Below are positions 20,590-39,041 of a stretch of 64,000 bases of DNA, in pieces (position 1 is the first letter of the stretch; each line of letters starts with the position of its first letter). The DNA lies in assembly GCA_009103225.1 (NCBI GenBank), contig RHPI01000797.1, positions 843,723 to 907,722 on the forward strand, read 5' to 3'. The notes under the pieces were generated by a model that had not been told where the DNA came from, made no database searches, and worked only from the letters and a program-made list of their open reading frames with translations. The stretch is from Chlorokybus atmophyticus (lineage: Eukaryota; Plantae; Mesostigma and Chlorokybus algae). A program made the translations under genes and the position numbers.

Positions 20590-22049
20590 ATGCCCGACGT
20601 GAAGAACCTGCAGCTGGCCAAACCACCCGGCTCGTCTTCCCTGCGCAGGCTGCCTGATATTGCACCATCAATACCCTTTGCATACGGCACGGTTGCTTTC
20701 TGGCTTGGAAAGAAGGTACGCGCACAACAAATCAGCTCTGTATGCAGCGTGTATGACACAACATGACACACATAGCATCTACGGCTGTGGCCTGGCAGGC
20801 GGACGAATATCATTCGCACAGATGGACTTGCTATGTGCGGTCAACCGACAACACAGATGATTTGGCGTACATCATCAAGCGTGTGGTCTTTAACCTGCAC
20901 CCTTCCTTCGCCAAGCCTACTCGCGTTGTTGAACAGCCTCCCTTCCAAGTAGGCAGCTTTACCAGCCCTCACGCCTGGCTGTTTGTTGGTTGCATGACTC
21001 GTTGAATCAACTCTCTGTGACTTCGTGCAGGTGACAGAGACAGGCTGGGGTGAGTTTGAGATCGCCATCACTGTGTTCTTTCAAGGTGACGCAGCTGAGA
21101 AGCCAGTTGAGCTGTTTCATCACTTAAAGCTCTACCCCGAAGAAGAAGCTGGCCCGCCAAATACCAAGCGACCAGTACGTGCTTGTCACTCTTGTGTTCA
21201 TGGGTTGACCACTATCTCCAGACGTCGTTATCTGCATGAATCCAGTCGACACCCGGAGCGTTGTTACAACTGTCAACATACATTACAGCTTTATGCCACT
21301 GTTGTATGCTAGCTTTTTCTCATCCGCTACTGGTATGCTTGCGCTTAGCTGATTGCCAACGTGGCACAGGTGGTTGTGGAAAGCTACGATGAGTTTGTCT
21401 TTCCTGAGCCAACAGAAGCGTTCTACGCCCGTATCACGGCGCATGCAGTGGAGCGGGCTGCATTGGCAGAGCCTCCAAAAGGTTGGTTATCTTAGCAAGC
21501 ATCCTATCAACATTGCAAAGCGTCCTTGTGATTGTGAATTTGGTGACTGTTTGATGCATGCTTTGAAGTAATTGTTGCTTTATTGTAGATGACTTGTCAG
21601 ATCCAGTGTCTGCAAAAAGAAATCTCAACAGCATTGCAGCCGCCCAGGCAGCAAATTCCGCAGCCAATCCTACCGCCAAAACAGCTCAGGTAGGCTAGTG
21701 CACAGTTCCCGTGCTACTCTGCTCAACTGGCTGACAGCCTCTTTGGCGCTATTGTGTTCACTGATCGATCGCAGGAGGTTGGTTCGACGCCAATGATGGG
21801 GGTGTTGTGGCCTTTCTTTCACACGCATAGCGGTGCAGACGAACTAGCACGTGTCCAGGCAAGCATGGCTCGCTCGCTCGAGGTTTAGTTGCTGTTGCCT
21901 TATCATGTCAAGTTCATTGCTAATGCCCTCATGCTGCACTTTTGCAGGCAGCTCGACAGCAGGTATTGGAGGCTGCGCAGCAGATGCAGCAGCAGCTGGC
22001 AGCGTTGGAGGCAGAGATCAGGCACCTGCGAGGCATAGAAACCGTGTAA
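20590..22049 (+). CDS. YAF9: YEATS-domain protein (Yaf9/GAS41 family, NuA4/SWR1 subunit)
   Basis: [15 protein letters not shown]|[15 protein letters not shown]...[25 protein letters not shown]|[17 protein letters not shown]...[10 protein letters not shown]|[14 protein letters not shown], plus a C-terminal coiled coil; ATG 20590, TAA 22047-22049. Confidence 0.93.
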
Positions 22050-25000
22050 TTGCGGTTGTCTGCACCCTCTGGTATACAACGTCACACTATTTATTGTACA
22101 GATTGTTGTATGCGCATTTTGCTGCTTACTTCAGTTGCAACTTATATATTGCAGCTGATATGTACAGGATGTGCTCAAGGCAGTTTTGTATATGCAGTAT
22201 GCAGAAGCAAATAAGCGCACACATAGTGGAGTGGTGGGGGAAGAGAGGAGGTGTGGGGGGAGATTGGGAGGGAGAGAGCGGGTTGCGCTGCACCACACTG
22301 CATGTCATCCGCCTGCACATTAACGTCCTACTAACTGCAACAAGTATTGCACAGGTAATGACTGGACTCTACACAGCATGCATGCATGACTGACGGTGGT
22401 GGTGAGTAGGTAGATAAGTGTTAGGCATAGGAATGAGGCAGTGAGTGCAATGTATAGCCCAGTGGTTGTGTATGTATGATTGCATGCGTGGTAGAGTGCA
22501 ATGTCACATGACGTGTGCATGCCATGTGTATGGTTGCCTTGCATGCATGACATCCCCATTGCATCTTGTAAACACAAACAGCATGCAAGCATGGTCATAT
22601 GCCATCAATGGGCTAAGATCCATTGCTTGTTGCTACCTAACACGCTACATTAGCCTATACCTCCCCGTTAGACATGCATACATGTTAGTGTCCATTACCT
22701 GCACGACAGGCAGGTATAATGATACGCAAACGTGCAGTTTGCAGCTTCCGTTAATTGCCGCTCGTACATTGCAACCTATATGTTTCCTGATGCGCGAGCT
22801 CTGCTACTGTTAAGCAGTGTTCTGTGTGGTGTGGTGGGGACGGTCAGATCTCGCCCCGAGTGCTACACATCATGCGGCAGTTGCCTATGTATGTGATCTG
22901 GTTTGTGCAAAGGCATGTGAGCCCCTTAGCTAGGTGGTGTGCTCAAGTTGTAATGTAATGATCTGAACGGTGCCTTTACTGTTTTGCTGTGTTCATACTA
23001 TAAATGCTTTGTCAACCTCATTGCTATACCCTATGTAAGCACTAGGTAATATTGATGCAGATGCGTCATTGTGCTGAGACAAAAAGGGCAAGCAGGTAGT
23101 GGTGGACACAGCTATAGACGTATAAACGCGTACTCGGTATAAGCACTATGCAGTGTTACTCATTATCTCATTGCGCCTGGCATTGTGTGTGAATTTGCAT
23201 TGGGTGCCAGCCGCGTTTTGTATGCATGTGCATTAAAGCGTACACCAACACACCCATCCCCACCGTAAATTCGCAATTTATATTGGTTGCTACATTGGCA
23301 TATGCTGATGATGTGCATATTTTGATGCATATGTTGCACTATAAACGGTAAGTAGTATATGAAGAAGAAATAAGATACTGATACACTTATCTAATCCTTG
23401 CAAAAATATCTAACCGACCAAGTGTTGAACACTAGGTTGATTGATATTGTACATATGTCCAATGCAGTAAATGTCGAGTAACATAACACAATATATGTGG
23501 ACTTGTAAAGACCCATGAAAAGACAGCACCATATATGTGTGCTAACATCATGATGTCGAAGAGTGCATGGGAGTATACATAATTAATCACTTGTTTGATT
23601 AAGTGGTAAAAGAGTGTGGCGCAAACATCTTGAAACGCTTTTAACAGCAGGCTTTTGTCATGGTTGCTCAACGTACAGGATATGCTAGTAGTTGTAGATA
23701 TGCATGACATCACTCACAACATGCCAAACAGCATGCACCCCACACAACCAACCACCAGCGCTGACCCACGCCCACGCCCTGCCTGCAGGTACAGCCAACG
23801 GGCCTTGCTGGCTGTACGTCGTCGTTGCTGTCGTCGTTCCCTTGCTGTTAAGTTACATAGAAGCATTATGCCCCTAGCTAAGCCCTCTGAGGAATAAAGC
23901 TCTGGGTGGGTGCGTGGGTGGCTGTGCGTGTGGGATTGTAGATCGCCATGTGTGGCATAGCATGCAGTGCATGAATGAAGCACCATATCAGATATATGCA
24001 AGCTCATGGTAACACAATCACCGGGCTATGCACACTGTTTGTTTAAAGCTCACTACATTACATAAAATTAAACCTCCCCGTTAAGCATGCATACATGCGT
24101 ATTGGTAGTGCATTACTCGCCCACACGGTGTGCTATAATGTCATTGGTTAAACAACAACATCCCATATATGATGTCGATGTGTGCGCAAGTGAACAGTGA
24201 AATGTGTTTGTCAGCACGTGTCGATGCAATTATGAGGCTACCAACTCATCATATGTTTATCATATCATAAATTACTTAACAATTGCTTAATACCCTTAAG
24301 TTTTAACCATGACGTGCTGCAATATTGATTGAATTGTTATAGCATTCACATCACGAGAGGGGCGCTAGACAATACATTGCGATATTTCTGTAACAATTTT
24401 TAAAGTTTCTGTAGGTGTCTTTTTAATTTTTGATTGTGGCACGAATATAAAACATTACTACACAGATTGCAAACCGGTGGCCAACAATAATCACATGGTC
24501 AGAACCTTTTTGGACCGGCGAAATATAATGTGATGGCATGCTTGATGTTAAATAATATGCACATATACCATAATATGCATTTCATTGGGTCACATAGTTT
24601 TTTGATGGTATTTATTATAAATCTTACAAGGTGATACAGCAGCCAAAAACAATGCCCCTGTACATCCATACATAATTTATAACATGTTTATTGCTTAATG
24701 ACGTATTATAAACATTATAGTGTAATGCTTGTTTGTATGACGTACTTAACACCTGTAAGTTAGGGGCCCTAACTTGCAGCCTGTAACACCTGCAACAGGC
24801 GGACCAAGGAATATATGCACGTAAATTGGAAACGCACAGTGGAACGGAGTTTCCTCCGAATTTCGCCAGTATGTGTTTCGTCGTTGGTATCGCCATGTTT
24901 CACCAGAGTGGTGCTGCATGGCGATTTGGCGAAATCCTGCAAATGCATGAGGCATACGTGACACTTGCATGACGCATGCTCGTACGCGTGACGCATTACA

Positions 25001-25311
25001 TGTAGTATTGCATGTTCACTATGTGTGTGACGCAATACTACGATACAGCAGGTTTTGCACAAACACATCAGTATAAGGTCATATACATTGCAACTAGCGG
25101 TGCGGCTGATTGGGCGACAGATCGAACGGCCGATACCTATTGACGCCTAACCAATGAGAGGCAGGCAGGCCGCGCAGCCCGGCAGTCGCGGGTGCCGTAT
25201 GTAACTGGCCGTCGTGCGTGGGGCGCGGTGATGTGTCTGGGTGCACTTCGCCGGCCGGCCCAGCCACAACAAATCTCGCCGAATGATACGCGACGCGCGG
25301 CTTTGCAGCAC

Positions 25312-25420
25312 AGCATATGGCGTCACTTGATCACATATCGTATGATGTGCTAGCATACGACATCATATGTCGCGATATGCTCTACAGCATATGTTGGATA
25401 TCACACATATGGTGTCCGCA
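25312..25420. repeat. 10-bp-period CATATG/CATATC array A1
   Basis: gcatatggcg..acatatcgta..gcatacgaca tcatatgtcg cgatatgctc.. Confidence 0.75.
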
Positions 25421-25523
25421 TGGAATGCGCTTCAGTTTAGGTCAATCAAACATGATTTTCGGTTCCGTCATATTAACTGAGGTTATCCGTCACATTTTAA
25501 CTGAACTCTGCCAATCAAACACT

Positions 25524-25628
25524 TATGACATGCGACATCGCACCATATCGTTCCATATCATAACATGTGTTGTCACAGCGGACATATGCCGGCATATGAT
25601 GTCATATGACGTAATATGGCGCGGCGTC
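25524..25628. repeat. 10-bp-period array A2; left arm of an imperfect inverted repeat with 28097-28198
   Basis: ccatatcgtt ccatatcata ... catatgccgg catatgatgt catatgacgt aatatggcgc. The reverse complement aligns to array B with two exact 16-mers (catatgacatcatatg and atgttatgatatggaa). Confidence 0.85.
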
Positions 25629-25867
25629 GCTGGACATCGTGAGTTCCCTGTGCAACATGTTAACAGAGATTCAGTCAAACTGTGTTTCGTGCGTAATGTG
25701 CCTGCGTATGATGGGATATCATACGCGCCCGGGCGATATGATCGATGATTACCACGGCCCGGAAACCAAGTTGCATGCAAGCTCTTGGACAGCAGTGACG
25801 CCAAGATTGTCGAGCTTAGCGGCCGCGTTGTTCGTTTGTGCATTGCGTCGTCTTCTTTCTCAGGTCC

Positions 25868-28123
25868 ATGGCGGGTTCTCGGCGTGTTGCCACCTTCGAA
25901 AATTACTTCGTCCGTTGCATCTATGGCTGCAACCTCACGGGCCTACACAAAGGCTGGATCGCCAGAGTGGGAGTGCAAAATTTCAGGTCTCACCTTACTA
26001 GCGGTGTTCACGAGGACGCCTTCAATGCATTAACACGCCAACAGCAAGACGACTTGCTGAAGTACTGGTTGGATCTGGTGAGTCCTGCATGGTAGCATGC
26101 ATTGTGCATGTTTGAATAGTAAACTGTTCCACAGCTTGAGAGTTCAACAATGCGCAATGTCATTGTCAATTTACTTTGAGTGCATGTTGCTGTTTGCATA
26201 ATGGCACATGGGATGGACTTATGTGGGATTGTAATCATCTATGTACTTGTTGCCACTTAGGGTCGGGCTGCAGTGGCACGACACAACTTCAATCCTACTG
26301 TGGGTGCCTTTATGCCAGTTGCTGGAACGTGGCCTTTGCAGCAACCAACCCCCCTGCCACCGTCGCTGCATGATGTTCTGCACCCTGTCGAAATCTTATA
26401 CGATCCTAATCTTATTGAAGACTCCAATGCCAGTGCCTTGACGGTGCCCACAGGTATGTGACTGCTTCGTGGTGACAGTAACGGTTTCATTGAATGCATG
26501 TATCCCAACAGGTCTTCGTGTGACTCCGTCTAAGCGCCGTAGGAATTTGTCTATGGCGCCTGATACTCCCACCACGTCTTATGTCACTGACGCTGAAACA
26601 GGTGATCAATGTCATCGTTGCAGAGGTTCCCACCTGATCCGTGAATTATATGAACGCAGGGGAAGCAATGCCGCGGTTGCCAACTCACCAATTTACACCT
26701 GAGCTTATGCGTGCTGCTATCGACACCTTCAGTGGCCACCTGACTCGTGAAGTACAAAACAACGCTCGTCTACAAAACGAAAGTAAGGGAAATTGTGGCA
26801 TTGTTTTGACACACACCACTGATGGCATTGTTGGCAGATTTCAAACTAGTTGACGAGAACACAGTCCTTCGCGAGCGTAACCTGAAGCAAGCAGAGCAGC
26901 TACGCCGCAACCAGACACAGCCTGTTCCCCAGATCGCTGCAAAGCTGTTGAAAATGATCAGTGAAATCAATGGTCTGCGTGCAGGCCATGCTGCTGCAGA
27001 ACAACGCTCTGCTGACCTGGAGCGTGCATTACACGAAGAGCGTGCTGAGCACGTTAAAATGACAGAAAGTGTCAAAAACGCAGACGCAGCAAGCATCGTG
27101 GGTTTACGCAAGCAGCTGACAGAAGTTCAGCGCAGGGCCACACAGTTGCAGCAACACAATGAGCGTAATGATGCAAGATTGGCGCGCCTGCAATGCCAGA
27201 TTGGAGAAGCCAACCAGACAATTGCTGCACAAAAAAAAAAGGTGTGTGTTGCTGCACTGTTAGATTTTCCAGCAACTGACATTCTGTTGTAGATCTCAGA
27301 GTTGACAAGCGTCCTGCGTCTTCAAACGGCAAACTGGCGATTTCGTGAGCGTGTTGAACCCAATGGCGTGCAGTTCGAGAGCTTCCAGCAGGAACTGGAA
27401 GTCACCAGAAAGGAGTTGGACAGCTTGGCAAAATACATGTTGAAAGAGATCGACCTTGACGGACAGGTACTGAACAATTACAATTATGACAATTATCAAC
27501 AAATGCAACACCTTGGTGTTCATTGGTTGGTGTGCCAGGTATCGCTCCTCAATCGCAGAGATGTTAAAAGGCAGCTGCAACTGCAACTATACCAAACACT
27601 ATGGGAGAAGCTTTGTACCTACCTCTGCACAGTTGCCCCGTTGTTGCGTGAAGCAGCAACAACCGAAGAAATGCAGCAACATGTGCGCCAGGACTACAAG
27701 GGCAAGCGCGTGGTAGACAGTGAAGACAACACATGCGGGATCTGTTGCGAGCAGAAGCCAGTGGAAGTGTTGTTACCAATGCCATGTTGCGGAGCTACAC
27801 TGTGCCGTCAGTGCTTGAAGAAGCTGCGCACAGGATCTCACCCTCAAGTTGAGTGTCCTTTCTGCCGCCGCTTTCAACTTATTTTTATGCAGCGCCCACC
27901 ACGTGGTGTAGAGCTCCCCGATTTCCCTGTATGTGAACTCAGCAGCAGTGACGATGATGAGGATGTTGACACACACAATACCGGTGCTGCTGGCGCTGGG
28001 CCTTCGCAGCCACCCCCCCCCCTGAGTAGACCTGTATCATGGAACCCGTTTTGCTTGTGTGTTAACATGACGCACAGGGAACTCACAATGTCCATTGACG
28101 TCGCGCGACATTTTGCCATATGA
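25868..28123 (+). CDS. Coiled-coil + RING-finger protein (putative E3 ligase) with an N-terminal C2H2-like motif; 6-7 exons
   Basis: Phase-compatible GT-AG exons: MAGSRR...CIYGC...FRSHLTSGVH...YWLDL | GRAAVARH...VPT | GLRVTPSKRRR...AET | GEAMPR...NE | FKLVDEN...(coiled coil)...QKKK | ISELTS...DGQ | VSLL...CGICCEQKPVEVLLPMPCCGATLCRQCLKKLRTGSHPQVECPFCRR, followed by an acidic tail. Confidence 0.8.
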
Positions 28124-28198
28124 CATCATATGTTGGCATATCAATCGCTGGGTCACCATATGTTATGATATGGAATGGCATGGGGCAGTGTCGCATGA
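28097..28198. repeat. 10-bp-period array B; right arm of the inverted repeat
   Basis: catatgacat catatgttgg catatcaatc ... catatgttat gatatggaat. Confidence 0.85.
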
Positions 28199-28336
28199 CG
28201 AGTTCTTGCATACGTAGCATACGTACATTTATGAAGCTCACCACCAATATGCACCCATTGATTATATCGACACCAAAGCATGGTGTCACACAAACTGTCC
28301 AACACACATGGTGACCTACTCAAACAACAGCCAGTT

Positions 28337-29834
28337 TCACTCTTTTTTCTTTTTCTTATTGCCAAAACCGCTACCACTACGTCGGCGCGCCCAAAATGCT
28401 TTGAACCTCGCTGGGTTGCCTTCATCCATATTGTAACCTTTGCACCCTCGAGAGTCGTATTGGGCGATATACATAGCTTCTAACCAATCTATTCGCGCCT
28501 TGCAATGTCCTTTATCTAATACTTCCAACTGCACTTGCTCTTCAAAAGGTTTACTGCTATCTAAGTCAGGCAACATTTTCTTAGGCGGGTGTCTACGATG
28601 TTCCTTATAACGTCGACCTGGGTGGTTACTTTGACCGATATATACTTTCTGTGTTGCCACATGCGTCAACTTGTAGATAAACTTCACACCTGTGTTTATG
28701 GGTTGCGCACGTTTTTTGAGTTACGTGCAGAGGCGCGAATGTTGGTGTTGGCATTGATGCTGTTTCTTGCTGCCGAGGATCGCAGGATCATCTGGACCTC
28801 ATCGTTTACCTGCAAAGAACAATGGTACTATGAATGCTGCAGTACACATCCGAGATTGATGTTGAATATGGAACATATATGCGTAGCGAAGTAGAAGCAA
28901 GGCAACAGACCACGGGTACAGGATATGAACAAAGGGAGCCAATGCAAAAACAGAAGTGTAACAAAAGATGGAGCGACTGCATGGGTTCTGGCTTGATGTG
29001 CCCATTGTTGTTGAACTCTGCTACGCAACCATAGCATTCTCACGCATCGCGACTAATCTTGGCAAGCACAGTAATCCCATCATCAACTTGGATAACCACA
29101 CACCTCATTGGCAGCAACATTTGCTACTGGAGCTTCCCTTGGGTCTGCTTTGTTGATTTGCTCAATGATTTTTTCTGCCTTTCCTTGCGACATGAAACGC
29201 GCTGTCTCCCAGTTGCAAACTTTGCGAATGTGAACCAGCTCGAACACCTGTGAAACATCTGTTAAGTACAGGTATTTGGCCAATGACCCAGTGTCACATT
29301 GATACATACCTGATTAGCGTAAATTGGCTCTGCATTATCAGGAAGCTCTGGGTTGTCCTTGCGCATCAGAGTGTCCCACAGCTTGTAAGCTACTTGGCGC
29401 TTCAGGTCATCAGAAATGTCGATGCCGAGCTTTCTGAGGTAGTAGATGCATGTTCCTACACATACTTGCATCAGTTAACACATGCACCACAGTGTGTCAG
29501 TGTACATTTTCCGCTTCTCACCAGTTGCAATAGAGTCCCCGTGGTTTATGCGAAACTCTTGAGCTCTCTCTTTGGCAGGGCGAATTAACTTATCGGCCTC
29601 TGGCTTGGTGAATAGCCCCTCAAGCTTGTCGGGAGTGATTCCTGCTGAGTCACATGCTACCAGTTGTTTCGCTGTCAGCGGACGACCAGGCGCATCACCT
29701 CCAGAGCTACTGGTACGTGGACGCTTAGAGCCAGGTTCGTCATTGGAAATTTGAGCGTGGAGCCTCTCGAACAGGTCTTTTCCGTTAAAGTCCATGCTGT
29801 CAACCAAGTGCATTGTCAATGTAACGCTCGCCAA
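28337..29834 (-). CDS. GIY-YIG endonuclease with N-terminal degenerate helical repeats; five exons, ~345 aa
   Basis: Last exon KFIYKLTHVATQKVYIGQSNHPGRRYKEH...LEAMYI...GYN (GIY, YIG, Arg, Glu and Asn motifs). Exons 29834-29522, 29455-29310, 29247-29104, 28809-28725 and 28689-28337 all join in frame at GT-AG sites. One intron is only 35 nt, and the start codon is uncertain. Confidence 0.78.
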
Positions 29835-30242
29835 CTAATGACTCACAGGTTCGAGATCAAACAGAGGCCAACTGAGCCACGTTGTTACCTGTGTCTGGCT
29901 GAGGTGACAGTTTCCGACGATGGGCAGGTGTCTGAGGCAGGTGATGCGACAGGCATGTATGCACAGTGCCCTGCGACTTGATGTTTCAACTGGTGTACAT
30001 TTACAGCAGCGCCAGATATATTGCCTATGTATATCTGCGTGGCAAGGAAAAGGGTCTGTGTCGGCAGAACACCACGTGCTAAGCCATGCCGCCATGGGAT
30101 TGGTCAGAAGAGTTGATGGGGTGGAGGAGATGATTGCATACAAAGCATGGTTGGATGACGGGTGATACGGCAATCAACTGAATGTGCCATGTCATCAAAC
30201 CGTACATGCGTACAGTGTGGTCATGAGATGCAGTTCATCTTA

Positions 30243-30530
30243 CGCGATATGGTTCCATATCGTCGAACATGGAACCATATAACGCAATGTTTTGCAACAT
30301 CGTTCATTCATGCACAAACATCATGCGATATCCGTTGATATCAAACAACGTTGCGCAACAGCGTACCATGTCGCCTAAAGCAATATCGTCCAACTTGGCA
30401 GCATGTAGTGCAATGTTGTGCAACATCGATCTAACATGCTCAAACACTCGCGATATGCGTCGATATCAAACAATGTTGCGCAACATCGTATCATATCGCC
30501 AAATGATGCAACATATGTCACACCATTGCG
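30243..30530. repeat. 10-bp-period array C with a ~127-bp higher-order duplication
   Basis: cgatatggtt ccatatcgtc gaacatggaa ccatataacg; the block caatgtt.tgcaacatcg...gcgatat.cgt.gatatcaaacaa.gttgcgcaaca occurs twice (~30284 and ~30411). Confidence 0.85.
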
Positions 30531-30535
30531 CAACA

Positions 30536-33500
30536 CTAACTGGACTTACCAATTATCAACGTCAATCCCCAGGAACTGCTCACATTACCTTTGTAGTATC
30601 TAAACTGCGTCACTGTTCCCAAAGACCCATTGGCTACACCATCTTGCAGTGAAACGTTTTCTAAAACCAACACCTTTGCTCCCTTGGCGACTGAAGGTAA
30701 TAAGTTGAACTTGGGCTTGTGAATCCAGTCGTGTAGCTCGGGCACGTTCACTGCATTAGAAGTAATTTGTATTGGCACAATGGTATCGGCTGCAAAACGT
30801 TGTCTCACAATCATGCTGTTGAAAGCCAGTGTGTCTTGTACATGTGAACACAATATGGTTGCATCACTTGGTAACTGTTGTAAGTACTCCGAAGTGACCA
30901 GACAGCCACCTAACGCATCTGCTATCTCTGTTGAACTGGGTATGCCAGAACGAATCTGAATCAAGAATTCAGCAAACAGAGGGTCTGAAGCATGACGCAC
31001 TGAAACAGATAAAAAATGTTGCTTACGTAATGGCCACCTCTGTGATGCAGAAATATGGCATTTGTGGCAAACCTGCGATGTGTCTTGGACTTTGTGTCCA
31101 CAAACTGCTGGCAGTTGCTTGTGGTCACCAACCAATACAACGCCGATTGTTTGAAGAAATTCTCCACATAAACTTGCTGTAAGCGCAGCATCACCAAGTC
31201 AAACAACCGCGATGTCATCATGGAAAACTCGTCAATAACAAATACTCGACAATGATGTAACAGTTTGTAAGCATCATCCATAGCAGTTACAAACCGGAGT
31301 TGCTGACCGTTGACAGGTATTGCAAAGTTGGAATGTACAGTTGAAGCTGATGAGCTGAGCCGCAAAGCCGCAGCGCCAGTTGTAGCACTGAGTAAAACAG
31401 GTATCCCAGCAACGCGCAACTTGTGAGTGATGAATTTGGTCAAAAATGTTTTGCCTGTTCCTGGACAACCAGATATCACATGTAGACCAACCGGTGTTGC
31501 AATGATACTACTTGCGGTGCATTCTTGCTGGCTGGTCAAAGAGAGATTGTTCGCAAACGCAAACTCCTCAACATTCAATGTACCTTGAAACATTGGCGCC
31601 GATACATCTGAGTCCGTTGTCACAGTTGAAGCTGGAGATGCAGGATTGGATGATGAAGCTGTTGGATACTGCGTAGTAGGTTCTGGTGCAGTTTGACTGT
31701 CTGTCGGACCAGCTGCAGCCATAGACAAGGCATTAATAGCATTATCAGTGGTCTGCATCATGGCATTCATCATATGGTGAATCTTAACATCATTGTATAG
31801 ATGACGTTCGGCATAGCGCGTGACATGTGTCAACAAACTGCGGTTTGTGTTGTTAATGAAACCCCGCAACACACATTCTTCATAGTAAGTGCGTGATTGG
31901 TTGTTCAAAGAAATCAAATCAACTTCAGAGCGAAAAGTAACCCGCTGAAGAAGCAAATTGAAACAAAACCCTTCAGTGCTGTGTACAGGATGGTAATCCG
32001 TGAATCTGATGATGCGCGGGACAGCTAACTCATAAACGAATGCATTCAGTCTGTCTCTTAGAGTACGCACAGTGTTATGTGGCACAGTGTCTCCATCTCG
32101 GTGCATGTACTGTCGAAAGTAGTTGTACATTGTGACTCTTTCTACCTCGTCAGGCCTGACACAATAACGATGAATGGGATGCACAATTACTGTCCGTGCA
32201 CGACTGTTCACTATGCGAGAACGATTGTTAGGCAAACGCGTGTCAACATATGTTACATTGGACGACATTTGCATGATGGGAATATCTAAACATATCAAAG
32301 CAGCTTCAGCTGGAGCAATGGGTTTGGACAAGTACATTGTGTTCAATATGCGCAATTCGTTAACAGTCAATCCTTGCAAACCGAGTGCATTGGTGTCTAA
32401 TGCATCATCAACAGTGCCACAAGGTTCCATTTTTGTTGTGTACTTGACTAAATACTTGCTCCAATGACTGTCAGTGACTTGCAACACATTACAATGAGCA
32501 CCCCACAACAATAAAAGCACTGGATGTGTGGGAACAACATTGCGGTCACAAGTGCGTGGTCTGTAATAATCGTACCTGCGCGTTTCTGTGTTGAACTGAG
32601 GTCGACGATCTGGTTGTACGGGATACGGAAAGCCCATGTCGCACTTGTTGTCAAATGCTCTGCAGCCACTGCCAAAATCAGAACACTTGTGCATTTGCTT
32701 GCGTACAACATATTCATAAAGGACTCGCAGTTTAGAATCAGTTGGTACAATTATTTGCTGATTTGCATGGTCAAAATCTCCGGGGATAAACGCAGTGATT
32801 TCACTGCAAACTCGTTTAACATCGTCGGGATGTAACCACAACATAACATGTGCATGCAAAGATCCACGGTGTTGTGTTTCATACCTGATAACATAGTGCA
32901 TCACACGTCCAAGGATATCCTTTTGCATGATATATTCTTCAAAGAAGGTGCTGAACCGATGATGAAACAAACGTGCGCACTCCACAGGGGCATCGCGCCA
33001 ACTAAGTTGCGTGGAGACATTGTGGAGAACATTCTGCAAATCAATGATCTCAGGGAATTTGGTACTGGACACTTCATCTGCAGTCATGGTGACAAAGAGA
33101 TGAGGCATACCCCAATGCTCAACCAGACACAGCAGCTCACTCAACTTTTGTCGATGCCAACTCGGAGATCCAATGATGTCACCAGGGACACGAAATTTTA
33201 CAGCGTTTTTGATGGCATCGTTGATTGTGGCAGTAGGTCGTTGTTTGAGGAACTTTTCAATATCAGCGTCCACAGCAACTTCGCGGCACTTTCTGACTGT
33301 AAGAAGTGATTGACGGATTTGGTACATCAACAGCAAATAAGGCTTGTACAATGTGAAAACTGAGAACGATTGTGTAAGACGGAACTTGACATAGTCTGAC
33401 AGTCTGCTGTACACGTTACCATCAAAGAACCCACGATTGTGCGGAAACAACATGGGAAACAGAGCAGACTCAACAGTTAAACCAGGAATATTGTACACAC

Positions 33501-34332
33501 CACCTGTATCCATGTGTATCAAAAGAGGAACACAAGGCTCACGCAGCGACATATGTCCAACGCGCAACATGGTGTCCACTGTGACTTCAACTGTGCTGCG
33601 CGAAGGAAATGGCAACAAAGTGGTTAAAACGTATGTGTATGCTGATTCACCAGCAATGTTCAAAGGATTACGATCCTGTGCACGAGACACAATGCTACGA
33701 ATAGTAGATGAACCGACAGTGGGGATGCCGTCAGAACCAAATGGTTGTTCTGCCAAGGTCTGATATTTCTGAACCAGAGTGTTGGACGATAATAGCTCGC
33801 TCAACAACTCCAGCAACAAGATGGCATGTTGGTTCTGATGTGTAAACTCATCCCAAGTGATAAACGGACCGTTAATCATATTCAACTGCTGAATTTGGCC
33901 CGAAGTGAAACTGTATGAGTTATATAAGTCGCAAAGCGCCATGGACGTGTTAACAAGGGACAACATCTGCACTACCATTGGATGTATCTCCAACAACTTG
34001 CGAATGTACACTGCGCTGTGTAATACAATGTAACTGGAACGCTCCGACCCGTGACTACATCGATGGCATTGGTAGTAATCACTATCACACTTGGTATAAT
34101 CGGACATAAAAACATTAGCCAAATCATATGGTGCAACGGTGGATACTGATCGTCGATACATTGGACGATAAGTAGCAGCAGCAGAGTAAAACTGTACATG
34201 CCCGCACAAAGAACAACATTGCATTCGCGTGACAAACTTACGTTGTGCATCTTGCCAACAGGAAAGCAAATCATCGCAGTTGTCCCACAATTCGCAATGC
34301 TGAGACAAATCGCAATGTTGCTCATAAGTCAT
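30536..34332 (-). pseudogene. Helitron RepHel (HUH Rep + PIF1 SF1B helicase), frameshifted at ~31160 and lacking recognisable helicase motifs V/VI
   Basis: N-terminal CxxC..CxxC; GSPSWH...GMPHLFVTMTADE; YETQHRGSLHAHVMLWL (HUH); YLVKYTTK (catalytic Tyr pair); GCPGTGKT (Walker A); SATTGAAA; TVHS; FVIDEFSMM (Walker B). It continues in another frame as VVLVGDHKQLPAV...SVRH...VANGSLGTV. Confidence 0.92.
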
Positions 34333-34481
34333 AGCGGATGACGAAACAACACACCAGGAACATATCAACCGCCCTAGCATTTGTCGCCATCCAAAAGAAC
34401 CATCTCGGCACAGTCCAGCAATGAGGGCGTGCAAAGGTGCAAATCCACATGCACAATATCTCTGATGTGTAGTAAAATTTT

Positions 34482-34570
34482 GCGATATGATTACATATGC
34501 GGCGATATGGACCAACATGGTGCCATATGATTACATATGCGGCAATATGGCGCAACATGGTACCATGTGA
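34482..34570. repeat. 10-bp-period array D (40-bp higher-order unit)
   Basis: atatgattacatatgcggc.atatgg..caacatggt.ccat twice. Confidence 0.85.
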
Positions 34571-35216
34571 TTAGCAAACGCTGTTAAGTGTTTCAAAACT
34601 AAATAATCAACGTAACGTTCACGCCACGGTACGTGCTGCGAGTTTTAGTAGATAATGCTGAGGTTACGACCATTAAAATAATGCTAACCTGAATTACCTT
34701 AACGTTAAGATTCAACTAAACGAAAAATTGCATCGTTAGGCCACCATTTGGTCACGCATGAGATTGATCAAATGGGATCGCAACGGTGACAACAGCCAGT
34801 TGCTCAAAAAGGCAGCAAAATGGTCAATCATTGCAAAGATGCGTAAAAGATGCTCAAAAATATCTCAGCGGCAACCGCTTACCAACGGCGACCCAAATTG
34901 CTAGGGATTTAGTGCAATTGCGGCACAGTTAGTGGTTAAAACGGCCGCGTTTTTGGCGGTACGAGGTCGGAACAGGCCCCATACCCCAAAGACATGCCGC
35001 CACTACTCACCCTTGTTCTAACTAATCCACTCTACCCTTTAACGCTAATTGATTACACGCTATAGTTACTGCGTCATCAAACATGGTCAACAGCCGAACT
35101 ACTATCGTTCATGAATTCTCGGCTATACGTCCCTCGATATACAGGGGCCAACACTTGGTAGTTTATCATGCGACTAACGATGGTGCGCACTGAAACTTGT
35201 CCCCGTTTATCGTTTT

Positions 35217-35366
35217 ACGCCCTAATAGCGGCAGTCAGCCGGCTACCGGCCATACCTCACGTTATGTGGAGTATATGTACCCCATTAGACCGGCGCAAAG
35301 CGGCACTTGCGCTGCAGCATGATCGGTCGGTGGGCAATCGGCCGGTCATCGAGAGTATTAGGGCGT
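35217..35366. other. Compact foldable element: candidate structured ncRNA or transposon terminal structure
   Basis: 11-bp closing inverted repeat acgccctaata/tattagggcgt; inner stem CTACCGGCC/GGTCGGTGG; two hairpins (ATACCTCAC..GTGGAGTAT and GCGCAAAG..CTTGCGC); T runs downstream. Confidence 0.4.
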
Positions 35367-36474
35367 TAGGAAGCGTTAGAGGGCGTTAGCGACGCTGCTT
35401 GATGGGTTTTGCAACTTTTCGTTCTTCGGCGCTGGATGTTTTTTTAGGTTTGTGTTTTAGCTAATTGTATCATTTCACAGTTAATCTCAGAATGAACAGT
35501 TTGTGTTTCTATGGTACTTAGTAAACAGTAACCACTAGTTGCAAGCTTGCAAATAGTGTTCTAGCACAACCACAGCTGCTAACCGGCTTCGCCAGGTTTC
35601 GCCAGCATTGGCCAATACCGCCAAAGAGCATCCACCGATCGCCAAGGGCCCTGAGGTTTCACCGTTTACACTGGAAAGGCACTTCCGTCGCAGCAAATTT
35701 CAGTCGTTGACGAAGTCGCTTCGCCGTACGCTTTGGAGCTCCCCTCGGCTCGTACGGTCTCATTGTGGGCCACGCAATCCGTTAGACTCATACATCATCA
35801 CGTGACACACAAGCCACAAGCCAGTTGCAGAAAGCAGCAGAAAGGAAAAGTGGTGTGAAACTTTTGCTGCTCTGCCGCGAAAGCTTCTCGTGGGCCAGAA
35901 GTTCTGGCACTGTTGACAAGGTTGTCGAATGACAACACATGAACAGGCTGTGTGGCTGTTGTTGACGGCAAACGGTTTGTTACAAACCCAAACATGAGTG
36001 TGATGACGAGTTCGTCGTACGGCGGGCCTCACCCTCGCTCTCGTGCTGCCCTGCCCCCGTCCGTACGTACTCTGCCGATTTCGTCTCAACAACCAGCTGA
36101 GGAAGAGAGACTGATATCCGCTTGCTCGATGGCCAGCCAACCGCGACCGCGACTCCTCCAGGCAAAACACAGCGATATCTGCTCCATGCCGTCCAGTATA
36201 TAGACCAGCTTTATCCCAAAAATGTAATTTCCAGTCAGTGGCTGAGGTGGACTGACGCAGAAGCAGAGGCAGGCGGCGGCGGCGGCGGCGGCGGCGGCGA
36301 GGAGGCTGTGCTTGGGGTGGACAGCGAAGCGTGTGACCAGGCATGACAAGGCAGTAGAGGACGGATCGGAAGTGTCAATTGAGTTGAGCTACGCAGGGAG
36401 GAGGGAGGCTCTAGGTTCAAGTTCAGGGTCCAACCACCCACACCTGCCCCCCGGCCCAAGCAGTCACCGACGCC

Positions 36475-39041
36475 ATGGCAGACTACTACCCCGCCCCCGG
36501 GCGGAATCACCTGTTCGTGCCCGGACCGGTCAACATCCCCGAGCCAGTGCTGCGTGCTATGACCAGGTATGTTGCTGTTGCTGCTGCTGCTGCTGTTGAT
36601 ATTGTGGTTGTTGCTGCTGGTGGTGTGTAAAGGGTTAGCTGTTTCTCGGTGTATAGTTGTTGGGAATATCCTGGACAGAAGCAAATGGGTTTTGAGTCAT
36701 GTTGATGCTGGGAGGTGTGCTGTTGTGTGCCACCCCCTCTGCATGCCCGTGTGTGTCTCGACGTGTGTGGAAGCGTTTACGCGTGGTGTTGTATGTGAAT
36801 GTGTGTGAACCATCACGTGTCCACAACAGGAACAATGAGGACCACCGATCTCCCGCGTTCCCAGCCCTCAGCAAGTCCGTGATCAATGACACGAAAAAGA
36901 TCTTTGGCACGGAGACCGGCACGGCGTTCATCTTCCCGGCGACGGGCACGGGCGGCTGGGAGTCCGCCCTCACCAACACTCTATCACCGGGAGACCGCAT
37001 CCTCACCTTCCGCTTTGGACAGTTCTCTCTTCTGTGGGTCAACCAGGTGAGACACACACTTCTCACCCCAACCAGCATATATTCACAGTGTGGATCTCTC
37101 TCTTGTGCAGCATGCATCATTTTTGTGTAAGCGTCTCCTGTATATGGTGGCATACAGCCGTAGAGATCTCAATATGCGGCAATGGCATAGGGGATTGCAC
37201 TGGCAATGTTAGTGACCTAAGCGAGCTGCTGGGGCACCCTCCTAGTTATGGCCTTGTGGTGTATGTTGGCACTGGCATTAGAGTACACCAAGTTTACTTG
37301 TGCTGCTGGTGTGCGTGTAAGTTTGCATTATGTATGTGGGTGATTGTGCAGGCGAGTAATATGAAGACATTTTTGATCTGCGGAATTTCGATTGCCTATC
37401 GTGCTGTTGTGAACGTGTTCTGCAAAGCACTTGCCTTGCCTTACTTTTGCCCATGTGCAATTTGTTGTTCTCTCTCAGATGGAGAGGTTGAGGTTTGACG
37501 TGGATGTGGTGGACGTGCCCTGGGGCGAGGGTATAAATCTGGACATCCTCCGGGAGAAGCTGCGCGCTGACACTGGCCGCAAAATCAAGGCCGTCGCCAT
37601 CGTGCACAACGAGACCTCCACCGGCGTCACCAACCGCCTCTGCCAAGTCCGCAAGGTGCGCATGTGGTCACTTATACATGTTAGTAGCACACATGTTGGG
37701 TGTGTTGGGTGTGGCGCACACAGACCCACAACTTACTGCTGTCCAGGTTATGGATGAGGTGAACCACCCTGCGCTGTTCCTTGTGGATGGCGTGTCCTCG
37801 ATTGGCGCCCTGACCTTCAAGATGGACGAGTGGAAGGTTGACGTGGGTCTCACGGGCTCCCAGAAGGCCCTCTCCATGCCCACTGGCCTGGCTATTGTGT
37901 GTGCCAGTCCCAAGGCCCTTGAGGCCGCCAAGACGGTGAGTGCACATTAGTATTGGCAGTTACAGAAACTCGCATGTCATTGAGTATGGGAAGTCCTGAT
38001 ATCAATTGTGTGTATGTGGTGCTGTGTCTATGATAGGCGTCGAGCACAAGGGTGTTCTTCGATTGGGGAGATTACCTGAAGAGCTATGCCTCGGGCGCTT
38101 ACTGGCCATACACGCCTTCGATCCAGCTGCTGTATGGTCTGCGCACCTCCCTCGACATGCTCTTCCAGGAGGGCCTCAAGGAAGTCAATGACCGCCACCA
38201 CCGCCTTGGCGAAGCCACCAGGTGCAGAGTCCAACAGTCATTACAAGCGCCATACTTATGCACGCACATGCATGCGCAGAGGAGTGCTCGCAGCTGCATG
38301 TTTGCACATACGTGTGCAGACATGCAGCTACACGCACAAATGCACACGCGAATGCACACATTATGCTCGTCAGACACATTGTAATTGTTGTTGCTTGACA
38401 AGCCACCAGTGGAGTCTGCTATCAGCAGTAGTTGTTGTTGCGTGTCTCACATGTCCACATTGTTCACAGGGCTGCAGTAAAGGCGTGGGGATTGAAGAAC
38501 TGCACGGCGCGGCCTGAGTGGCACTCGGACACGGTGACGGCGGTGGTGGTTCCCGACGGCATTGACTCCACGCAGGTCGCCCGCCACGCCTGGAAGAAGT
38601 ACAACCTCTCCCTCGGCCTCGGACTCAACAAGGTCGCCGGCAAGGTCTTCCGCATTGGCCACCTCGGCTCCATGAATGAGGTGTGACACTGGTGAACGAA
38701 AGCATCTATGTTGGCTTTGCTGCTCTGTTTGCTGGTGTGGTATGTGACTGTGTGTGGCTGTTGAGTCCAAGCGGGGTCACATGTGTGCTTGTGGCACACT
38801 TATGTGTGAGTACACGCGTCCCTACATGTGGGCATGTGTGTATGTGTGCACGCCTGTTCGTGGCTGTGTTCACAAATATATTGACATCATGTTATGTTGG
38901 CAGGTTGCCATTGTTGGGGCCATTGCGGGTGCAGAGATGGCGCTGCTTGATTGCGGCGTGAACATCACGCCGGGAAGTGGAGTGGCCGCGGCGCAGGCTG
39001 TGCTGCGCAAGCTCACGCCCATGATCCCGTCGCGCATGTAA
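36475..39041 (+). CDS. AGT1: Serine:glyoxylate aminotransferase (peroxisomal, photorespiration), 7 exons
   Basis: PGRNHLFVPGPVNIPEPVLRAM; NNEDHRSPAFPAL; IFPATGTGGWESALTNTLSPGD; VHNETSTGVTN; LVDGVSSI; TGSQKALS (PLP lysine); YWPYTPSIQLLYGLR; FRIGHLG; C-terminal SRM (PTS1 type). Confidence 0.97.

Follow-up and report, generated by a model that had tools for sequence, protein, structure and literature searches.

Helitrons are thought to need only one protein, the RepHel transposase. The GIY-YIG nuclease fold is found in another kind of mobile element, the Penelope-like retroelements, which show that such an element can use this fold for nicking its target. In a stretch of 64,000 nt from the streptophyte green alga Chlorokybus atmophyticus (contig RHPI01000797.1; called the window below, and all coordinates refer to it) a broken RepHel gene is accompanied by an accessory gene with a GIY-YIG nuclease domain and by a convergent RING-like gene. 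The block containing these genes is read here, with a probability of about 0.7, as a single decayed and non-autonomous copy of a rolling-circle transposon of the Helitron family, in which the GIY-YIG gene is an accessory gene and the RING-like gene is a lineage-specific extra.

Some rolling-circle elements are known to carry a second nuclease. Helentrons (Thomas et al. 2014, PMC4067079) are HLE2 elements in which an apurinic/apyrimidinic (AP) endonuclease is fused to RepHel. The Chlorokybus element is similar in that an unrelated endonuclease is found beside the HUH nuclease of a rolling-circle element. However, the fold is GIY-YIG rather than that of the AP endonucleases of the endonuclease/exonuclease/phosphatase (EEP) type, the nuclease is encoded by a separate gene rather than as a C-terminal fusion, and no OTU or RPA gene was seen in the element. 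Pfam searches of the open reading frames (ORFs) found no AP endonuclease, and the relatives of this RepHel end in helicase motifs V/VI and a short tail. Because it lacks an AP endonuclease, the Chlorokybus element is not a Helentron. Helitron2 of Chlamydomonas and other organisms (Bao and Jurka 2013, PMC3627910) is described as a RepHel element lacking an endonuclease, with two hairpins and asymmetric terminal inverted repeats as its defining features. These are also RepHel elements of green algae, and Volvox carteri has the same GIY-YIG subfamily beside RepHel. The Chlorokybus element differs from Helitron2 in having the nuclease, and its inverted end matches are found only at chance level. 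Membership in the HLE2 (Helitron2/Helentron) group is a candidate assignment, and its one indirect support is the HLE2 classification of a GIY-YIG-bearing family from Sphagnum.

The idea of a nuclease partner is not entirely new, and the arrangement has a published precedent. A single sentence of the HELIANO paper (Nucleic Acids Res 2024, PMC11417382) says that HelenSM92, which is an HLE2 family found in Sphagnum magellanicum, has a "captured" GIY-YIG domain. Both cases involve a Helitron-like element in a green-lineage host with a GIY-YIG domain besides RepHel. Compared by description only, the Chlorokybus-type nuclease differs in that it recurs in distant lineages and co-diverges with the Rep domain, and in that it lies behind a conserved helical-repeat gene, often after an in-frame TGA. 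Among homing endonucleases the catalytic domain resembles that of I-TevI, which it matches at E 7e-9 with the Tyr, Tyr, Arg, His, Glu, and Asn residues conserved. The Chlorokybus nuclease lacks the I-TevI type of C-terminal DNA-binding region and has N-terminal helical repeats instead. It is also distinguished from homing endonucleases and from the enzymes of Penelope-like elements by its carrier, which is a DNA rolling-circle transposon.

The transposase gene

The transposase gene has the expected domains and motifs of a Helitron, but it is no longer intact. The main ORF extends from 34518 to 30961 on the minus strand and encodes 1185 amino acids. It matches Helitron_like_N (PF14214, E 6e-25), PIF1 (PF05970, E 2e-15), and Helraiser, the solved Helitron transposase (7LCC, E 2e-18). 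As in Helitron-like proteins, one polypeptide holds an HUH Rep domain with HxH and two tyrosines, followed by a PIF1-type helicase of superfamily 1 (SF1). An earlier note on this DNA, made from the sequence alone, had described a RepHel with HUH and PIF1 motifs, and all of the motifs were located, including TMTAD (Table 1). The gene is not complete. There is one frameshift at 31162-31174, and alignment with three relatives by tblastn left no surplus sequence that could be an intron. The 3' end lacks the last approximately 110 residues, which contain helicase motifs V/VI (HKSQGAT and LSRV) and are present in all of the relatives, so that the helicase of this copy is truncated after the 2B domain.

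Homology to other RepHel proteins ends at about 30554-30611, the stop codon at 30536 directly adjoins a repeat array, and no further similarity is found beyond it. It is as if a deletion or replacement had taken place at this junction (30536-30611). A tandem and phased array with a 125-bp unit begins exactly at the RepHel stop codon and occupies the place of the missing motifs V/VI.

The accessory gene and its nuclease domain

The accessory gene has two parts that are now out of frame with each other. The first part is a gene of four exons, whose product comprises three short helical repeats followed by a basic tail. Its introns are all of the GT-AG type with compatible phases, and they are 66, 62, and 294 nt long. 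Searches with the spliced models were made exon by exon, and exon pieces were pooled only for counting stop codons and the GC content of third codon positions (GC3). The nuclease ORF begins a few bases after the last of the four exons, exon D', in another frame and without its own ATG. At the junction the nuclease frame reads TAA-CTC, and this frame differs from that of the exon before it. The earlier note had proposed a spliced GIY-YIG gene on the same strand as RepHel. The strand and the splicing were borne out, but the domain has no start codon and lies behind a four-exon gene in a different frame. The present copy of the element is therefore dead on two counts: RepHel is frameshifted and without motifs V/VI, and the GIY-YIG domain lacks a start codon and does not share the frame of exon D'. 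A 35-nt intron joining exon D' in frame to the nuclease domain was considered and is unlikely next to introns of 62-294 nt.

The nuclease domain itself belongs to the I-TevI-like branch of the GIY-YIG superfamily. It has the GIY and YIG strands and the catalytic Arg, His, Glu, and Asn. A word search with the ORF gave no match. A profile of six GIY-YIG sequences (A1) produced the match to I-TevI (1MK0) cited above, and 6/6 of its members matched TIGR01453. The positions that are invariant in the six sequences (Y3, Y14, G16, R24, H28, E68, and N84) include all of the catalytic residues. In the AlphaFold model of an unbroken relative, P0081, the predicted local distance difference test (pLDDT) score of the nuclease domain is about 98. 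SLX1, which combines a GIY-YIG nuclease and a RING finger in one protein, was weighed as an analogue of the nuclease-RING pairing and rejected, since the profile gives no match to it (E 1.2). A first impression that the helical repeats are HeH/SAP-like was also set aside, the P0081 model having pLDDT below 60 in that part.

Co-occurrence of the nuclease and RepHel in relatives

The distribution of the nuclease indicates that it is not confined to this one locus. Word search found no near-identical RepHel in the protein collection, but it returned twelve relatives at 23-43% identity. Contigs were taken for seven of them, at 30-43% identity. A tblastn search showed that a GIY-YIG domain of the same subfamily accompanies RepHel in five of the seven relatives. 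It is downstream of RepHel on the same strand in three contigs (L003, L005, and L007) and upstream on the same strand in two (L001 and L006). The remaining contigs end about 1.1 kb or less past RepHel, which is too short to judge whether a nuclease is present. In the three contigs with the downstream arrangement, segments homologous to the three repeats are found between RepHel and the GIY-YIG domain, so the whole accessory gene is conserved.

Searching from the nuclease side gives a similar picture. Searching with the profile gave 306 clusters at E<=1e-10, two of which are annotated proteins of Volvox carteri, and the signature H..P[PN]x[RK]M is present in 100 of the best 150 of the 306 clusters. 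RepHel sequence is found within 10 kb of the nuclease (<=10 kb) in three of the five distinct loci obtained in this way: L011 from Volvox carteri, L012, and L014. The distances among Rep domains and among GIY-YIG domains are correlated (Mantel r 0.56, exact p 0.014, seven pairs). From these sequence comparisons it appears, with moderate confidence, that the nuclease and RepHel have a long joint inheritance. The claim of the earlier note that there is a lineage of elements with a separately encoded GIY-YIG nuclease is supported, since homologues of the nuclease stand beside RepHel proteins at 30-43% identity and the search from the nuclease side leads back to RepHel. It had also suggested looking for all three genes together in relatives. 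The nuclease and RepHel co-occur in five of the seven, but the RING-like gene is in none of the relatives fetched.

The same data bear on a different explanation of the nuclease. The GIY-YIG gene could be a selfish, free-standing gene of the homing endonuclease type that hitch-hikes in Helitrons, as I-TevI-like genes do in phage genomes, and has no role in transposition. Its domain is closest to I-TevI and the endonucleases of group I introns, it does not keep a fixed place or direction relative to RepHel, and two loci have the domain with no RepHel within 10 kb, all of which would be expected of such a gene. However, it co-diverges with the Rep domain, it has a subfamily signature common to at least 100 clusters, the upstream helical-repeat exons have been kept together with it, and its catalytic residues are preserved at about 25-40% identity. 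These last points speak for a long joint inheritance, with which a selfish passenger would also be compatible. On balance a hitch-hiker without a function in transposition seems improbable, and an accessory gene of the element is preferred.

Two further structures were seen among the loci found from the nuclease side. In L018 two Helitron-type GIY-YIG domains are arranged head to head at 10259-10964 (plus strand 10259-10564 and minus strand 10964-10683), and the pair sits among host-like genes for biotin carboxylase, RabGAP-TBC, and Zip. In L013 and L014 an 8.1-kb block (2717-10852) is 99.8% identical in two flanking contexts. It has a GIY-YIG gene near its right end and a DUF3431 gene, and it lacks RepHel. 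This block may be a non-autonomous derivative. Comparison of L013 with L014 for the termini of a related family showed no recognizable Helitron ends on the shared 8.1-kb block.

In-frame stop codons before the nuclease domain

An in-frame stop codon precedes the domain in many of the relatives. A TGA in frame with the GIY-YIG domain lies 0-11 codons before it, after the basic tail, in six loci (L003, L005, L007, L012, L011, and L017), and in 4/6 of these loci its context is TGA-CT. Other relatives have no such interruption. In P0081, P0069, and P0016 the upstream part is fused to the nuclease without a stop codon, and in two further relatives the nuclease has its own ATG.

The Volvox carteri proteins annotated at L011 (GL378323.1) and L017 (GL378332.1), XP_002945726 and XP_002948681, leave out the first of the GIY strands, and in the genome a TGA directly precedes that strand at both loci. 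The Volvox gene models probably splice around the stop codon, and that stop codon may be read through. At 9900-10520 of L012, the public gene call P0047 takes several in-frame TGA codons as Trp, and this call does not translate under the standard code. The last of these codons is the one that precedes the GIY-YIG domain. The P0047 call looks like an artefact of the alternative code chosen for this contig.

The RING-like gene, repeat arrays, and element ends

The RING-like gene appears to be intact, and it was found in none of the relatives fetched. Its seven exons are separated by GT-AG introns of 51-183 nt. In order, the product has a finger-like Cys/His region in the first exon, a long coiled coil, a C4C4 RING-like finger, and an acidic tail. 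The finger contains eight cysteines with the spacing C-x2-C-x13-C-C-x4-C-x2-C-x14-C-x2-C. Its score against Pfam zf-C3HC4_3 is 22.4 bits, below the 27-bit cut-off, and the neighbors of the protein in the atlas are all RING families, with scores of 0.89 or less. Thus the spliced, convergent coiled-coil/RING gene that had been described is supported as a seven-exon model on the plus strand, while its RING finger stays below the Pfam cut-off. The proposal that this gene is a feature of the whole element family is not supported, as it is absent from all of the relatives fetched.

The origin of the RING-like gene can be approached from its position. Word search detected no homologue, and none was found in any of the fetched relative loci. 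In the three contigs with the nuclease downstream of RepHel (L003, L005, and L007), the contig ends 150-360 nt past the GIY-YIG domain, suggesting that no gene of the element follows the nuclease gene there. The 3' side is a usual place of gene capture by Helitrons. Because the gene is absent from relatives, and because their contigs end soon after the GIY-YIG domain, it is probably a lineage-specific, host-like addition that the element acquired on its 3' side. Base composition does not give a verdict on its origin: GC3 is 0.53 for the RING-like gene, 0.55 for the YEATS gene, 0.80 for the aminotransferase gene, and 0.43 for RepHel.

Arrays of one repeat family mark the boundaries of all of the genes. 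The units are phased at 10 bp and end in ATATG or a near variant, and there is one array at each of the four gene boundaries. When the window was scanned with a relaxed ATATG-type motif, these four arrays were the only in-phase arrays in the 64 kb, and the in-phase motif count was far above that in shuffled sequences. The statement in the earlier note that a single decamer array family punctuates the block is in full agreement with this. The relatives L001-L010 showed no phased arrays, and the arrays are peculiar to the Chlorokybus element lineage. It is speculation that they are binding sites for a protein of the element.

The arrays also help to delimit the element. The RING-like gene is placed inside it because there are arrays on both sides of the gene and because a hairpin and a fall in GC content lie beyond it. 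The hairpin is the only perfect stem of at least 7 bp in 23800-25340. The DNA past it is AT-rich, with GC content down to 0.39, and this palindrome (24757-24775) is a candidate 3' terminus of the element. The 5' end was not found. Alternatively, the element might stop just past the GIY-YIG gene, at about 28200, and the RING-like gene would then be a host neighbor or belong to another unit. This would fit the absence of the gene from relatives, the ends of the three contigs at 150-360 nt past the nuclease domain, the intact state of the RING-like gene versus the broken RepHel and nuclease junction, and a GC3 value (0.53) equal to that of the host YEATS gene (0.55). However, an array family that is unique to the block in 64 kb flanks the RING-like gene on both sides and is also found upstream of RepHel, and both the decrease in GC content and the sole strong hairpin are located beyond this gene. 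An end at 28200 is considered unlikely, and the element probably extends to the candidate hairpin.

Two of the arrays form an inverted repeat of 138 nt that is 80% identical (BLAST) and brackets the RING-like gene, with arms at 25529-25665 and 28060-28197. The gene and these arms could in principle be a separate terminal-inverted-repeat transposon nested in the Helitron. No target-site duplication was found at the ends of the arms and no transposase is present, and arrays of the same type occur outside of the arms at 25300-25410, 30240-30535, and 34477-34573. A nested transposon is very improbable on these grounds, and the preferred reading is still that of one Helitron-family element with the RING-like gene as an extra.

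Possible mechanism and its significance

In working copies of the element, RepHel would carry out strand cleavage and unwinding. The accessory nuclease would additionally nick the target or the second strand, and in this way it would fill the slot that the AP endonuclease has in Helentrons. In many relatives it may be made at a low level through read-through of the in-frame UGA codon. The RING-like gene would be cargo; an anti-silencing role for its product is speculation. A more ambitious version is that a widespread green-lineage clade of Helitrons needs a second nuclease, a helical-repeat protein to which the I-TevI-like GIY-YIG domain is added only by UGA read-through, so that the dose of nuclease stays low, and that the Chlorokybus family in addition acquired iteron-like arrays at all gene boundaries and the RING-like gene as an element-encoded regulatory system. 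This version is improbable in its entirety.

Several observations weigh against parts of the interpretation given here. The proposal that the nuclease is the nicking enzyme of the element is made by analogy. The helical repeats at its N-terminus match no Pfam or NCBIfam family, and in the AlphaFold model of P0081 they are helical with pLDDT below 60. The junction in the window has a TAA and a change of frame rather than a TGA, and the window itself thus offers no argument for read-through. Nuclease-side loci L017 and L018 have no RepHel within 10 kb. Elsewhere the orientation of the nuclease varies, as it is convergent with RepHel in L012, and in L011 the two lie about 5 kb apart on opposite strands. 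Matches of the type expected for asymmetric terminal inverted repeats are at chance level between the end regions (5 versus 5.9 in shuffles, with one 8-mer). Finally, one copy was examined, so the ends of the element and the membership of the RING-like gene are unproven.

If the interpretation is true, a GIY-YIG gene that is inherited together with RepHel across Viridiplantae would be the second extra nuclease of rolling-circle elements, after the AP endonuclease of Helentrons, and the partnership would be a testable handle on Helitron integration. That a UGA recurs in frame ahead of the nuclease domain suggests that a transposon nuclease is controlled at the level of translation. The RING-like gene and the phased arrays would indicate how much lineage-specific equipment such elements can gather.

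Genomic setting

The block lies between two ordinary host genes, as had been noted before: a YEATS-domain gene to its left and, to its right, a gene for serine-glyoxylate aminotransferase. Pfam scans and a listing of the ORFs confirmed the three coding units in the block. No part of the element was found a second time within the 64-kb window by self-BLAST or tblastn. Coordinates of all features are given in Table 1.

Table 1. Features of the Chlorokybus element and its flanks, in window coordinates.
Feature	Position	Strand	Description
Element block	~24.75-35.4 kb of the 64,000-nt window		Roughly 10 kb; bounded by two host genes
YEATS-domain host gene	~20760-21300		Left flank; recognized from translated exons; GC3 0.55
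Candidate 3'-terminal hairpin	24757-24775	minus	Perfect palindrome AAGTTAGGGCCCCTAACTT between direct AGGTGTTA repeats
Phased arrays upstream of RING-like gene	25300-25665		Includes the left arm (25529-25665) of the inverted repeat
RING-like gene	25868-28123	plus	Seven exons; convergent to nuclease gene; consistent phases, no stops
Phased array between GIY-YIG and RING 3' ends	28060-28197		Right arm of the 138-nt inverted repeat; inverted repeats I1/I2
GIY-YIG nuclease domain	28337-28687	minus	I-TevI-like; PF01541, E 3e-6
Accessory gene, first part	28696-29813	minus	Four exons; three short helical repeats, then a basic tail with a terminal TAA
Accessory exons	A 29813-29522, B 29455-29310, C 29247-29104, D' 28809-28696	minus	
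Phased array, two 125-bp tandem units	30240-30535		Upstream of accessory gene, begins at RepHel stop; direct repeats D4-D6; self-BLAST 81%
RepHel transposase gene, broken	30536-34518	minus	Pfam, Helraiser match, tblastn of relatives, motif positions
RepHel Walker A	31470-31447	minus	
RepHel YxxxY two-tyrosine motif	32457-32431	minus	KYLVKYTTK
RepHel HUH motif	32862-32836	minus	SLHAHV
RepHel motif FVTMTADE	33096-33073	minus	
Phased ATATG array upstream of RepHel	34477-34573		10-bp phase; 40-bp higher-order unit; Tandem Repeats Finder (TRF) period 20/40
Serine-glyoxylate aminotransferase host gene	~36700-38700		Right flank; recognized from translated exons; GC3 0.80, very high

Simple repeats are also found outside of the block. 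A long CT run, a long GA dinucleotide run, and short tandem repeats of the GACCAG/GGCC type are located at 7450-7700, 8980-9100, 13800-13880, and 14960-15030 of the window, and they are unrelated to the arrays of the element.

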